Shown: positions 55,534-63,454 of the stretch, one piece after another
How the letters are laid out: every line of letters begins with the position of its first letter
Numbering within the stretch: position 1 is the first letter of the stretch
From: Octopus sinensis
Lineage: Eukaryota
Length of the DNA: 64,000 nt
Assembly: GCF_006345805.1 (NCBI RefSeq)
Contig: NC_043026.1
Coordinates: 12,193,579 to 12,257,578, forward strand
Reading direction: 5' to 3'
Notes under the pieces: model-generated
Database searches by the model: none
Seen by the model: the letters and a program-made list of their open reading frames with translations, nothing else
Told to the model about the DNA's origin: nothing
Translations under genes and position numbers: made by a program

Positions 55534-55742
55534 AATAATAATAATAATAATAATAATAATAATAATAATCTTTTCTACTATAGGCACAAGGCCAGAAGTT
55601 TTAGGGCAGGGAAACAGTCAATCACATCGACCCCTGTGCTTGACTGGTACTTATTTTACCAACAGGTCTTGTGCCAAAATTTGAAACCAATAAGATAAAA
55701 TATTTTGATTTTTGAGCATTTTTTTTTTTTATTTTTCAGATC

Positions 55743-55785
55743 ATGCAAACGTTAGCAGCGAGTCTATTTCTTATTTCATTCTTCT
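55743..55785 (+). CDS. Ig-like gene coding exon 1 (signal peptide MQTLAASLFLISFF, ends in phase 1)
   Basis: Acceptor TTTTTCAG at 55739, ATG 55743, donor GTAAGT 55786. Confidence 0.8.
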
Positions 55786-56030
55786 GTAAGTTATTATTTT
55801 GGTAATATCTTTAACCTTAAAAATTGCTCAATTTTAACCTATTTTCATACTTTTAAAACTTTATTTTCTTACATTTTTTAACCTTATTTTTTAAAACTTT
55901 TATTCTCAAATTTTAACCTCATTTTAACTTTATTATTATTAATAAATCTATGGATTGTTGTGACAAAAAACAGAACATTTCTCTTCAATTTATCAAATAT
56001 AAAAACTGAAATCAAAATGATCTTTTACAG

Positions 56031-56072
56031 GTGCAATATATGAAAGTGTAGGACATAAAATTGTTCCAAATG
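56031..56072 (+). CDS. Ig-like gene coding exon 2 (CAIYESVGHKIVPN, phase 1-1)
   Basis: TCTTTTACAG acceptor, GTAATT donor, 42 nt. Confidence 0.75.
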
Positions 56073-56230
56073 GTAATTATATTTTCCAAATGTTTACTGA
56101 TTTTAAACTATGTGTTATCTTTAAGTACTGGTCTAGAGATTCTCCGGGTTTCTGTTTCCTTGTGGCCAAAAGATGGTGTGCCATTATGATATTCTTTGGT
56201 TTAATATACACACTCTTTAGTGTATTTACA

Positions 56231-56675
56231 GCTTTACTCTTTTACTCTTTTACATGTTTCAGTCAATTGACTGCGGCCATGCTGGAGCACCACCTCTAAT
56301 CGAGCAACTCGACCCCAGGACTTATTCTTTTGTAAGCCCAGTACTTATTCTATTGGTCTCTTTTGCCGAACCGCTAAGTGATGGGGACGTAAACACACCA
56401 GCATCAGTTGTCAAGCAAAGCTAGGGGGACAAACACAGACACACAAACACACACGCACATATATATATATATATATATATATATATATATATATATATAT
56501 ATATATACATATGTATACGACGGGCTTTTTCAGTTTCCTTCTACCAAATCCACTCACAAGGCTTTGGTCGGCCCGAGGCTATAGTAGAAGACACTTGCCC
56601 AAGGTGCCACGCAGTGAGACTGAACCCGGAACCATGTGGTTGGTAAGCAAGCTACTTACCACACAGCCACTCCTG
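56231..56675 (-). mobile_element. SINE family A (intronic)
   Basis: Matches A consensus. Confidence 0.88.
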
Positions 56676-56971
56676 CTTGTTCATAGTTCTTTATATAAAG
56701 TCAATTCCCTTCATATCAAAGGAAGTCACTCAAATCATAACACAATTTGCATAACTTTAGCCTTTTGGTGTAAAATGCACTCTTGTTTATATTGCTAGTG
56801 TGGAGATAAGTCCCCGCCATCTCCAGTGCCGAGACCACCAGATCACATGATTTCAAGTTGGGTCTAGTCAACAAGGGACGCTCAAACCTTATCTGTTTTT
56901 ATCTCATTACAAAAACTCTTCAGTTACTAACTTTTTATTCATTCTAATTGGTACCTTAGCAAGGCCTAGAA

Positions 56972-57254
56972 ATAGTGGAAGCATGTGGACTAGTGGTTAG
57001 GGCAGTGGACTCGCAGTTGAGGGATCGCGGGTTCGAATCTCAGACCAGCAGGCAATGTGTGTGTTTATGAGCGAAACACCTAAGCTCCACGCGCCTCCGG
57101 CAGAAGGTAAAACCGAACTTCTGCTGACCCTTTTCTCTTGCATCTTGCAGCTCACCTGCGACGGACCAGCGTCCCGTCCAGGTGGGGAACCTATATGCCA
57201 AGGAAACCGGGAAACTGGCCCTTCTGAGCCAGGCATGGCTCGAGAAGGAACAAA
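56972..57254 (+). mobile_element. SINE family C with 11 bp TSD
   Basis: AAGGCCTAGAA at 56961-56971 and 57255-57265. Confidence 0.87.
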
Positions 57255-57366
57255 AAGGCCTAGAAGTGAACCTCAAATTCCCAGTTACCAAGTCTGTATC
57301 ACGCATTCTGCCCAGATTATCAGCCGGTCAGCTTACAGTGATATCCTGCCAAAATATCATCATAAT

Positions 57367-57587
57367 CTATTTCATTACTGCCCACAAGGGGCTAAACACA
57401 GAGGGGACAAACAAGGACAGACAAACGGATTATATTGATTACATCGACCCCAGTGCGTAACTGGTACTTAATTTAATCGACCCCGAAAGGATGAAAGGCA
57501 AAGTTGACCTCGGCGAATTTGAACTCAGACGAAATACGTCTACGTATTTCGCCCGGCGTGCTAACGAGTCTGCCAGCTCGTCGCCTT
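57367..57587 (-). mobile_element. SINE family B monomer
   Basis: Matches B consensus. Confidence 0.85.
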
Positions 57588-60415: not shown

Positions 60416-60885
60416 GTAAGTCAATGGAATATTATTTTATTTCTGTTTATTTGGCGAATGTGTTCTTTTTGGCTCACAGTTGTTGAAATATCAAAATTAA
60501 GTGAGATTTTTCAAATTTGGTTTATTCATGTAATTTTTCACGCTAAATCTGATTTTGTTATTCATTTGTTCCAGAAAAATTTGAGGAAACTTTGAGGAAG
60601 GTTTATAATTTGACAATTTTTATCCAATCAGGAAAGAGGGTTTAAAAGCTGGGATAAGTTTTAAAGAAAAAAGTCATGTGAAATGCTGGGACAGGCATAG
60701 GGTCTTTTCTGTTTCACTCATGGTTTTCAATTCATTTAATTTTTTTTTTCCAGTTTGGTGTATTAATTTAGTTTTTTATGCTAAACATTTTCGGGAAAAA
60801 AAAATTTCGTTCAGGATATTTCATTTTTATACTGTTTAGATGCCTGGGATCTCTTCTGGTCTGCTCAAATATTTTGAAAATTTAA

Positions 60886-61400
60886 CTGGATGTTTGATTT
60901 TTATCACTCTCAGTACATGTTTTGGGGACATGGCAAGACAACGGTTGTTCTGTGTATTCACTAACTGATCCTGGCAGAAATTTTTCTCATGCTTGAGTTT
61001 GTTCAGACTTACCTCTTGTCCTTGATGGATTGGGATATAAATTGGCCCTTTCTCATCTTGTATGAAGAATACTGAATGTCTTCATGCATTACCTGCCTGA
61101 TAAGAAACTCAGACACTCCCATGTCACTGGCGATGGACCTGATTGACTTGGAGGGATCGTTGTCAATCATGGCCTAGATCTCACCAACAAATTCGGGAGT
61201 TCTTCTCTTATCATAACGATCAGAGTGAGTTTTCTAAGCTGTTGTGCTTTTGTAATCCCCATTAGACTCATCCAACTCCTTCCGAATCCTCTGCACTGTC
61301 CTCAGATTGACACCCAAACACTCTGAAATAGTCATATTGGAGCTTCTGGTGCAAATGCAGTACAGCATGTTCCCAAATTTTTGGCAGAGCGAATTGCGTC
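60886..61400 (-). mobile_element. Tc1/mariner (maT/DD37D-like) transposase relic
   Basis: ISECLGVNLRTVQRIRKEL HTH; RTPEFVGEI..MIDNDPSKSIRSIASDMGVSEFLIR...YKMRKGQF; FCQDQ. Confidence 0.75.
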
Positions 61401-61737
61401 TTGGTGCTGTTTTTCTCTCAGACAGTGCCCAACTGACCCTACGATACTGTGTAGTCGACAAAATCAAAAACAAACAATGTGCACGCGTGAAATTAAAAAA
61501 TATAAAATGGCAACAAAATTTACCCTTCGCAGCCTGTATATATGCCATAGCGGATCTATTTTTAGCGCAAGAGTCGACCATATAGTGGTCACTCTCTTAT
61601 ATTTGTGTATAAATTTTTATTGTATCCCTGGTTTTTATGCACTAAGCCACTTGGTGTTAAATTGATGGTATTATCAAATTAATATCCAATTTTTTCACCC
61701 TTATTTTTGATTATATATATATATATATATATATATA

Positions 61738-62185
61738 GGCACAGGAGTGGCTGTGTGGTAAGTAGCTTGTTTACCAACCACATGGTTCCGGGTTCAGTCC
61801 CACTGCGTGGCACCTTGGGCAACTGTCTGCTGCTCTAGCCTCGGGCCGGCCAAAACCTTGTGAGTGGATCTGATAAACAGAAACTGGAAGAAGCCTGTCG
61901 TCTGTGTGGTGTGATGTGTGTGTGTGTGTGTGTGTGTGTGTGTGTGTGTGTGTGTGTGTGTGTGTGTGTGTGTGTATGTTTGTGTGTTTGTGTTTGTCTC
62001 CACACCATTGCTTGACAACCGATGTTGATGTGTTTACATCCCTGTAACTTAGTGGTTCGGCAAAAGAGACTGATAGGATAAGTACTAAGCTTACAAAGAA
62101 CAAGTCCTGAAGTTGATTTGTTTGACTAAAGGCGGTGCTCCAGCATGGCCGCAGTCAAATGATTGAAACAAATAAAAGAATAAAA
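61738..62185 (+). mobile_element. SINE family A with long (TG)n
   Basis: Matches A consensus. Confidence 0.87.
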
Positions 62186-62305
62186 CAATATATATATATA
62201 TATATATATATATATAATATATATATATATATATATATATATATTATATATATATATATATAATATATATATATATATATATATATTATATATATATATA
62301 TATAT

Positions 62306-62575
62306 ATGGCCCAGTGGTTAGGGTAGCGGACTCGCAGTCATAGGATCGTGCTTTCGATTCCCAGACCGGGCGTTGTGAGTGTTTATTGAGCGAAAACACC
62401 TAAAAGCTCCACGAGGCTCCGTTAGGGGATGGTGGTGATCCCTGCTGTACTCTTTCACCACAACTTTCTCTCTCACTCTTACTTCCTGTTGGCCTGCTTG
62501 CTTAGCCAGCGGGGTGGCGTCATTCGAAGGCTAAAACAATGCGAAGCGCATTGTGACCAGCGATGTGTGATCACG
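62306..62575 (+). mobile_element. SINE family F
   Basis: Reverse complement of 37195-37457. Confidence 0.78.
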
Positions 62576-62724
62576 GTGATATATAGTCTACAAAATCCAC
62601 TCATAAGGCTTTGGTCAGCCCAAGGCTATATTAGAAGACAAGATACCACACAGTGGAACTGGACGTAGTACCGTGTGGTTGCGAAGCAATCTTCTTACCC
62701 CATAACCATGCCTACACCTATATA

Positions 62725-63257
62725 CTCTTTACTCTCTTTCACTCTTTCACTTGTTTCAGTCATTTGACTGCGGCCATGCTGGAGCACCGCCTTTAGTCGA
62801 GCAAATCGACCCCGGGACTTATTCTTTTGTAAGCCCAGTACTTATTCTATCGGTCTCTTTTACTTGTTTCAGTCATTTGACTGCGGCCATGCTGGGGCAC
62901 CGCCTTTAGTCGAGCAAATCGACCCCGGGACTTATTCTTTTGTAAGCCCAGTACTTATTCCATCGGTCTCTTTTGCCGAACCGCTAAGTAACGGGGACAT
63001 AAACACACCAGCATCGGTTGTCAAGCAATGCTAGGGGGACAAACACAGACACACAGACACACACACGCATATATATATATATATACATATATACGACGGG
63101 GTTCTTTCAGTTTCCATCTACCAAATCCACTCACAAGGCATTGGTCGGCCCGAGGCTATAGTAGAAGACACTTGCCCAAGGTGCCATGCAGTGGGACTGA
63201 ACCCGGAACCATGTGGTTGGTAAACAAGCGACTTACCACACAGCCACTCCTGCGCCT
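62725..63257 (-). mobile_element. SINE family A with duplicated 3' segment
   Basis: Junction at CTCTTTT 62855-62861. Confidence 0.88.
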
Positions 63258-63294
63258 ATATAATTCATTTTAATATATTTTTTTTTTCTCTCAG

Positions 63295-63454
63295 GAACAT
63301 TTGAATTTCGTAGACACGGTTACAAGCAACTGTCCTCATGGCCAAACTCTTAGCAATGTCGGTAAATTAAGATTTAGCAAGCTTTCTGGAAACGTGACTT
63401 GCACTTTTACTTTAGACAAGATATTCAGAGAAGACCGAACGTTGCAAGTTGAAT
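63295..63454 (+). CDS. Ig-like gene coding exon 5 (second half of domain 2, phase 0-1); gene continues beyond the window
   Basis: TTTCTCTCAG acceptor, GTAAGT donor; EHLNFVDTVTSNCPHGQ...GNVTCTFTLDKIFREDRTLQVE. Confidence 0.8.

Follow-up and report, generated by a model that had tools for sequence, protein, structure and literature searches.

We analysed a 64,000-nt stretch of the Octopus sinensis genome (hereafter the window; NC_043026.1, positions 12,193,579 to 12,257,578), which carries towards its right-hand end five exons of a gene for a protein with two immunoglobulin (Ig)-like domains (D1 and D2) and three transmembrane (TM) segments. These are coding exons 1-5 of the nine that make up LOC115226530. 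All five are preceded by a pyrimidine-rich tract ending in AG and directly followed by GTAAG or GTAAT; with lengths of 43, 42, 249, 98, and 160 nt and cumulative end phases of 1, 1, 1, 0, and 1, they join into 592 nt free of stop codons, that is, 197 residues plus one spare base. The features of the gene, in window coordinates and, past the window end, in window-equivalent coordinates, are as follows.

55740..55785, forward strand: exon 1, with the ATG at 55743 and 43 coding nt; N-terminal half of the signal peptide (MQTLAASLFLISFF); equals exon 1 of the coding sequence (CDS) of XP_036371335.1.
56031..56072, forward strand: exon 2, 42 nt, phase 1-1; C-terminal half of the signal peptide, probable cleavage region, and start of D1.
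58110..58358, forward strand: exon 3, 249 nt, phase 1-1; the whole of Ig-like D1 (residues ~29-112), I-set/V-like, with I41 and F96 (no B-F disulfide), a CxxxC (C61/C65), and sequons N78 and N86.
60318..60415, forward strand: exon 4, 98 nt, phase 1 to 0; N-terminal half of D2 (strands A-C; C123, C131, C140).
63295..63454, forward strand: exon 5, 160 nt, phase 0 to 1; C-terminal half of D2 (C157, C180, sequon N177).
63455..64000, forward strand: start of intron 5, which is 5.5 kb long in the chromosome record; from 63517 on, for the most part a (CAT)n microsatellite.
68957-69067, 70762-70869, 73417-73548, and 78151-78176, beyond the window: exons 6-9, encoding TM1, TM2, TM3, and the tail with the stop codon.

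A sequence-only reading of the window had proposed exactly this set of five exons, with the same AG/GT sites, phases, and 197-codon frame, and every splice boundary that it drew from the raw letters coincides with those of the XP_036371335.1 CDS. This annotated product (P0055, LOC115226530; 322 aa, named "uncharacterized protein" in RefSeq) clusters at 90% identity with P0001, a 322-aa O. vulgaris protein named "hypothetical predicted protein" that is 97% identical across the whole query; the same protein search also returned "uncharacterized" proteins of O. bimaculoides and O. sinensis. Residues 1-197 of XP_036371335.1 are identical to the protein spliced from the five window exons, and window positions 45743-64000 match its genomic locus (L002; GCA_006345805.1 CM016888.1:12239321-12281754) at 18258/18258 bases. 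Re-derivation of the CDS on this locus yielded nine coding exons, the first five with precisely the predicted boundaries. Since the gene is already in RefSeq, its description as hidden holds for the prokaryote-style open reading frame (ORF) track, which did not call it, and not for its annotation; the gene itself was known and no new one was found. A tblastn search of the window with nine octopus family proteins gave matches confined to the five intervals, with E-values of 1e-23 to 2e-50 for the D1 exon, and uncovered no further paralogs there. The last base of exon 5 (T) is the first of the Cys198 codon, the rest of which is supplied by exon 6 outside the window. At the other end of the gene, a strong acceptor (poly-T...cag, 55725-55742) ends at 55739, 3 nt before the ATG, and the paralog LOC115210431 has a matching acceptor 3 nt before its own start codon (L001 9989-10000); because of these AG acceptors, at least one non-coding 5' exon, conserved in the paralog, is probably to be expected upstream of exon 1. 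Long microsatellites lie soon after two of the donors, namely (TCC)n at 58369-58624, 11 nt past exon 3, and (CAT)n at 63517-64000, which starts 63 nt past exon 5, spans at least 484 bp, and reaches the window end.

The sequence-only reading could name no ortholog. Two are now evident, O. vulgaris CAI9742548.1 (97%) and O. bimaculoides LOC106868859 (75%), the latter sharing with XP_036371335.1 81% identity in D1, 70% in D2, and 60% in the TM region and tail. Homologs with conserved exon phases were also looked for, and the O. sinensis paralog LOC115210431 (P0004; locus L001, CM016862.1:39491194-39561639) has them, with exon lengths of 43/45/249/98/160 and the phases of LOC115226530. The three Ig exons of both genes align without gaps, and their ratio of nonsynonymous to synonymous substitution rates (dN/dS) is 0.34 (0.19 for D1 and 0.53 for D2), with dS near saturation. 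As judged from this conservation, the five exons are not a product of chance and belong to a real, constrained gene.

We then delineated the ends of the protein. Kyte-Doolittle hydropathy places an N-terminal hydrophobic segment at residues 4-22, where AlphaFold2 draws a low-confidence helix (4-16), and by the -3/-1 rule the leader is probably cleaved between YESVG and HKIV. The ectodomain contains four N-glycosylation sequons (N28, N78, N86, and N177). In the orthologs, ...TLQVE is followed by C198, by three 19-residue segments of strong hydrophobicity, and by a short basic tail; the hydropathy profile identifies the three TM segments in both P0001 and P0003. In O. sinensis, TM1, TM2, and TM3 each occupy a separate phase 1-1 exon (111, 108, and 132 nt) with common intron flanks (atgatcttttcYag/GT ... 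gaaatg/gtat, the slash marking the exon boundary), which points to tandem duplication of an exon together with its flanks. The acceptor context gatctttt(a/c)(c/t)ag/GT is common to the three TM exons and exon 2 (L002 23215-27806). Because TM exons 6-8 follow beyond the window, the protein is membrane-anchored, not secreted: of the two options left by the sequence-only reading, secreted or cell-surface, the former is dropped, and the search of downstream sequence for TM exons that it had suggested turned up all three.

A distant relative, P0038, shares the three-TM tail, which is part of a complete 295-aa ORF that runs uninterrupted on mRNA-like Logan contigs of 1.1-1.2 kb from two sequencing runs. 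A 235-aa variant with a single TM segment (P0048) arises when the donor that closes the TM1 exon is read through (AAAC/GTAAGTAA, giving KRK-stop). This variant belongs to a decapodiform-like relative, represented by L003 and L005 (Logan SRR24189492 and SRR27666078), and the Acanthosepion pharaonis gene model ends likewise; it could be a genuine short isoform or unspliced RNA. We considered and discarded the possibility that the three segments stem from alternative use of cassette exons or from faulty gene models, in that one ORF of the distant relative carries all three and its one-TM form reflects donor read-through instead of exon skipping.

A multi-pass tail of this kind, with three helices joined by loops of 10-15 residues, is unusual among adhesion members of the Ig superfamily (IgSF), is conserved from octopods to decapodiform relatives, and reaches five or six TM segments in the paralogs P0026 and P0051. 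It could therefore be argued that the protein is an accessory or regulatory subunit whose three helices pack on a channel, transporter, or receptor and whose Ig domains modulate that partner, like Ig-bearing auxiliary subunits or proteins of the CD47 type. CD47 is a rare case of an IgSF ectodomain on a multi-pass anchor, with one IgV domain, a five-pass membrane domain, and a short cytoplasmic tail; P0026 and P0051 resemble it in the number of TM segments, whereas the octopus protein combines two Ig domains with three TM segments encoded by tandem single-exon duplicates. Pfam scans of P0001, P0003, P0026, P0038, and P0051 gave no match to the CD47 transmembrane region, nor was Pfam similarity to any other TM family found. 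Moreover, a single TM segment suffices in many paralogs, orthologs diverge most in the TM region (60% identity), and the TM exons look like simple tandem duplicates, all of which makes a subunit role improbable in our judgement.

To characterize the ectodomain, we predicted its structure with AlphaFold2 from 20 family sequences, which produced five models with pLDDT of at least 88 (89.1 and pTM 0.76 for the one retained) and superseded a first run with five sequences of moderate confidence (pLDDT 65.5). The model comprises two all-beta domains, with strands within residues 26-112 (D1) and 115-196 (D2). Foldseek retrieved 1110 PDB matches at E<=1e-3, and the 50 listed are all of Ig type, with a probability of 1.00 to two-Ig ectodomains. 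The best among those listed is bovine butyrophilin (4hh8; E 1.6e-9, TM-score 0.56), accompanied by D1-D2 of Roughest (Rst; 4of8, TM-score 0.59), D1-D2 of Neph1 (4ofd, 0.62), PD-L1 (3fn3, 0.61), and also BTN3A1, nectin-1, and CD200R1. The two Ig-like beta-sandwiches proposed from the letters are thus supported by both the model and its structural neighbours.

At the sequence level, a D1 profile built from 33 copies matched in the PDB the Ig domains of titin (E 1.5e-4) and myotilin (E 2e-3), as well as those of obscurin, CD2, neurotrimin, and NCAM, with the C-strand Trp and the E-F segment in register. This Trp, W52 in the window protein, is invariant in 33/33 aligned D1 copies, and its aligned counterpart in myotilin and titin is the C-strand Trp; D2 has no Trp, and C140 sits in its strand C. 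When family members were scanned individually against Pfam, the commonest D1 matches were I-set (8/33, best E 0.0067) and Ig_3 (4/33, best E 0.0022). The exon structure shows the symmetric phase 1-1 typical of the IgSF, D1 being encoded by one 249-nt exon and D2 by 98 + 160 nt, 1-1 overall with an internal phase-0 intron. We conclude that the membrane-distal D1 is an Ig-like domain of I-set/V-like type and that D2 is, on the predicted model, Ig-like of C-type. Three candidate matches were discarded in the course of these searches: Pectate_lyase_4 from the Pfam scan of the spliced protein (E 0.009; 16 bits against a cut-off of 24) as noise, PF20623 (Sgo0707_N2), precomputed for P0002, as falling below threshold on re-scanning (25.4 against 27), and a uL2 ribosomal protein, the top phmmer match to the PDB (E 0.058), as a chance hit.

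Among known proteins, butyrophilins and B7 molecules (BTN1A1 4hh8, BTN3A1 4f9l, PD-L1 3fn3, CD80 1dr9) resemble the octopus ectodomain in being membrane proteins with a distal V-like and a C-like Ig domain arranged as an extended two-domain rod, and they provide, besides the best Foldseek match listed, TM-scores of 0.52-0.61 over ~210 columns. However, sequence identity is 11-15% and the octopus protein has no Pfam V-set or C1-set match; B7/BTN proteins retain the B-F disulfide of the V domain and have one TM segment, with a B30.2 domain in BTNs, whereas the octopus protein has I41/F96, a CxxxC, and three TM segments. D1-D2 of the IRM proteins (Drosophila Roughest, 4of8; mouse Neph1, 4ofd) gave the highest two-domain TM-scores among the matches listed (0.59-0.62). 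These are cell-recognition IgSF proteins of invertebrates and vertebrates that bind through D1, and they consist of five Ig domains with canonical disulfides, one TM segment, and a PDZ-binding tail; no sequence-level relationship to the octopus protein was detected. The I-set domains of titin, myotilin, and obscurin are the best sequence matches of the D1 profile, aligning at the C-strand Trp and at the E-F signature LxIxxV..d..W, but they come from intracellular muscle proteins and the similarity is at the level of the fold family only.

We next examined the cysteines, which in the window protein are found at positions 15 (leader), 61, 65, 123, 131, 140, 157, and 180. As the sequence-only reading had noted, the B- and F-strand cysteines of D1 are replaced, by I41 and F96, and a CxxxC (C61/C65) sits at C'. 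Alignment of D1 copies revealed that the distant decapodiform relatives P0043 (A. pharaonis CAE1289077.1), P0050 (its Logan cluster-mate), and P0048 (a transcript-like Logan sequence) have Cys in both the I41 (strand B) and F96 (strand F) columns, while the pair is absent from 41/41 octopod copies having both columns. Because decapodiform homologs keep these residues, the alignment indicates that the canonical D1 disulfide was lost within the family, in octopods. Many I-set domains also lack a disulfide, and the B-F bond is not obligatory for IgSF membership (e.g., CD2 D1). The N-terminal domains of CD2, SLAM, and CEACAM likewise are membrane-distal Ig domains that fold without it, and the sequence-only reading had drawn this parallel. 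What stands is the missing disulfide; a specific similarity does not, in that the D1 profile matches CD2 at only E 0.09 (CD2 residues 83-151) and the 50 Foldseek matches listed include no member of these families, leaving an analogy. Retention of the bond in decapodiform relatives of the same family further argues, from the alignment, that the octopod loss is independent of that in CD2/SLAM/CEACAM.

Other D1 cysteines are candidates for replacement disulfides. C61 and C65, which span the end of strand C' and the loop after it, are nearly invariant (48/51 and 49/51 D1 copies, respectively), and where the spacing differs both move together. A further pair, located two residues past the Trp of strand C and five ahead of the F-strand position, has both members in 23 copies, neither in 23, and one in 5 (Fisher p = 3.6e-9); the window protein is without it, having S54 and F91 instead. 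A third D1 subgroup carries an F-G CxxxxC. In D2, the five cysteines counted from the letters (123, 131, 140, 157, and 180) were found as described, and a sixth associated one, C198, is completed by the next exon. C131, C140, C157, and C180 are invariant from octopus to cuttlefish. C123 and C198 occur together in all seven D1-D2 proteins having either, save for one divergent C-terminus, and are jointly missing elsewhere, a pattern that suggests a bridge from strand A to the membrane-proximal stalk. In the AlphaFold2 model, C131 (strand 124-133) and C180 (strand 176-184) are placed like strands B and F; yet the duplicated D2 copy (P0004 200-263; P0011 134-211) has lost both C131 and C157 while keeping C140 and C180, which calls the presumed canonical C131-C180 pairing into question.

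This conservation also bears on whether LOC115226530 is a functional gene at all. It might instead be a decaying or non-expressed model, its ORF kept by chance or recent duplication and its RefSeq entry merely an ab initio prediction. Such an account would fit the repeat-rich introns, the database names, all "uncharacterized" or "hypothetical", and the lack of transcript-derived sequence for the gene among the database search returns. Nevertheless, each of the nine O. sinensis exons is open and can be spliced, two other species have full-length orthologs, dN/dS between the paralogs is <1, W52, C61, C65, W94, and the four D2 cysteines are invariant or nearly so, and AlphaFold2 is highly confident, so we regard this account as very improbable.

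A profile search of 1.84 billion representative proteins returned 39 at E<=1e-3. The members whose source was looked up come from O. sinensis, O. bimaculoides, O. vulgaris, Argonauta hians, or A. pharaonis, or are unnamed Logan sequences. One five-repeat protein of Haliotis rufescens (P0040) also matched (E 2e-5), and this abalone protein passes Pfam I-set (56.8 bits against a cut-off of 23.7); two of the weakest matches, P0039 and P0044, look like low-complexity chance hits. Members have in common the D1 motif IPNMKRPVVW...YECDxTC...STLWIxNV..W.F.DDN, the four invariant D2 cysteines, and the exon structure. Their architectures include one to four copies of D1 with one TM segment (LOC115225115, LOC115225116), D1-D2-D2' (LOC115210431, LOC115232395), and D1-D2 followed by ~1 to 6 TM segments (five or six in P0026 and P0051). 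As far as sequence searches reach, this is a small, lineage-specific, cephalopod-restricted IgSF family, in agreement with the lineage-specific family suspected from the window: 39 representatives, cephalopod where the source was looked up, plus the one weak abalone match. It diversifies by duplicating phase-1 cassettes (1-4 D1, 1-2 D2, and ~1-6 TM) and by reshuffling non-canonical disulfides. In one gene model, P0023 (XP_036358517.1, "zinc finger protein 239-like"), six zinc fingers are fused to a family D1, probably a chimeric annotation across adjacent genes.

A family confined to one lineage, variable in copy number, with many isoforms per locus and plastic cysteine patterns among paralogs, brings to mind innate immunity. 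LOC115226530 would then encode a non-self receptor of a fast-evolving, lineage-specific defence IgSF, with a role like that of molluscan FREPs or variable IgSF proteins and not in developmental or neuronal adhesion; the ectodomain identity of only 70-81% between O. sinensis and O. bimaculoides and the relatively high dN/dS of D2 (0.53) point the same way. On the other hand, the best-conserved D1 stretches (IPNMKRPVVW and YECDxTC) are loop-proximal, which argues for a conserved instead of a diversifying binding site, D1 has a dN/dS of 0.19, and there is no fibrinogen, lectin, or signalling (ITIM/ITAM, TIR) module. We thus consider an immune role unlikely, albeit worth keeping in mind.

Our preferred interpretation is that LOC115226530, through its nine exons of which the first five lie in the window, encodes a cell-surface two-Ig, three-TM protein acting as a recognition or adhesion receptor, to which we assign a probability of about 0.7. 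The leader would be cleaved and the ectodomain N-glycosylated at up to four sequons, with the protein lying in the plasma membrane, N-terminus out and C-terminus in. By analogy with B7/butyrophilin, IRM, and nectin proteins, it may serve as a surface receptor in recognition or adhesion, with D1 as the ligand-binding module, and the three-helix bundle would anchor it, perhaps also linking it with membrane partner proteins. Several points weigh against this interpretation. The proposed function is drawn purely from analogy with two-Ig ectodomains. In addition, the Pfam scan, one of the checks made alongside the structure prediction and Foldseek search that identified the Ig beta-sandwich, was null: the window protein reaches no Pfam Ig model and close relatives likewise give nothing above threshold. 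The D2 profile has no significant Ig match in the PDB, only beta2-glycoprotein I at E 0.09, and the Ig assignment of this domain therefore comes from the predicted structure only. Basic residues follow each TM segment, an imperfect fit to a three-pass topology. Finally, no transcript-derived (Logan) protein with >=90% identity came out of the database search.

We further put forward, as a tentative and still doubtful proposal, that the gene is the founding member of a coleoid-specific class of IgSF surface receptors. Such a class would be built from duplicating phase-1 cassettes, namely disulfide-less D1, D2, and single-helix TM exons; in octopods the D1 disulfide would be replaced by the CxxxC pair, the co-varying C-/F-strand pair, or the F-G pair, and the three-pass tail would couple recognition to a membrane partner. 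If true, the class would operate in cephalopod-specific cell recognition (neural, chemotactile, or self/non-self), in parallel to the expansions of protocadherins and of C2H2 zinc-finger (C2H2-ZNF) genes beside which its members sit. To our knowledge, few surface-recognition molecules have been characterised in cephalopods, which makes it reasonable to map the expression of this family in the octopus cell atlases already available. Literature searches with twelve family locus identifiers, XP_036371335, and cephalopod IgSF found no description of the family. What is new here is the recognition of an unnamed, apparently cephalopod-confined family as IgSF with a two-Ig, three-TM architecture, together with the documented loss of the canonical disulfide inside it and the co-variation evidence for replacement disulfides; none of these findings challenges current understanding.

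Elsewhere in the window, at least six long C2H2 zinc-finger ORFs form a cluster in which an ORF can reach 22 fingers and E-values for zf-H2C2_2 fall as low as 4e-193; they are located as listed.

57-1412, reverse strand: C2H2 zinc-finger ORF.
7755-9341, reverse strand: C2H2 zinc-finger ORF.
14755-15786, forward strand: C2H2 zinc-finger ORF.
25556-26251, forward strand: C2H2 zinc-finger ORF.
27213-29601, forward strand: C2H2 zinc-finger ORF.
39083-40141, reverse strand: C2H2 zinc-finger ORF.

These ORFs give tandem signals with an 84-bp period (e.g., 46 copies at 25698-29553). The cluster fits the C2H2-ZNF expansion known in octopus genomes, and the paralog LOC115210431 (L001) also adjoins a C2H2-ZNF gene. 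A 63-bp tandem repeat at 33490-34216 (11.6 copies, 97% identity) is open in several frames on both strands and not obviously coding. Upstream of the gene and within its introns lie short ORFs resembling mobile-element fragments (55083-55436, forward strand; 59031-59336 and 61234-61581, reverse strand), for which Pfam reported nothing but a weak HTH_23 match (E 7e-4) in 61234-61581. A repeat of ~400 bp resembling a short interspersed nuclear element has many copies, including those at 62855-63262, 56243-56674, 40540-40921, 35230-35600, 2622-2998, and 44829-45021. The copy that ends 33 nt before exon 5 has its best match (88.5%) in a copy ~200 nt upstream of exon 5 of the paralog LOC115210431 (L001 50648-51065), an identity far above the 65% between the exons of both paralogs, for which independent insertion and conversion are both candidate causes.

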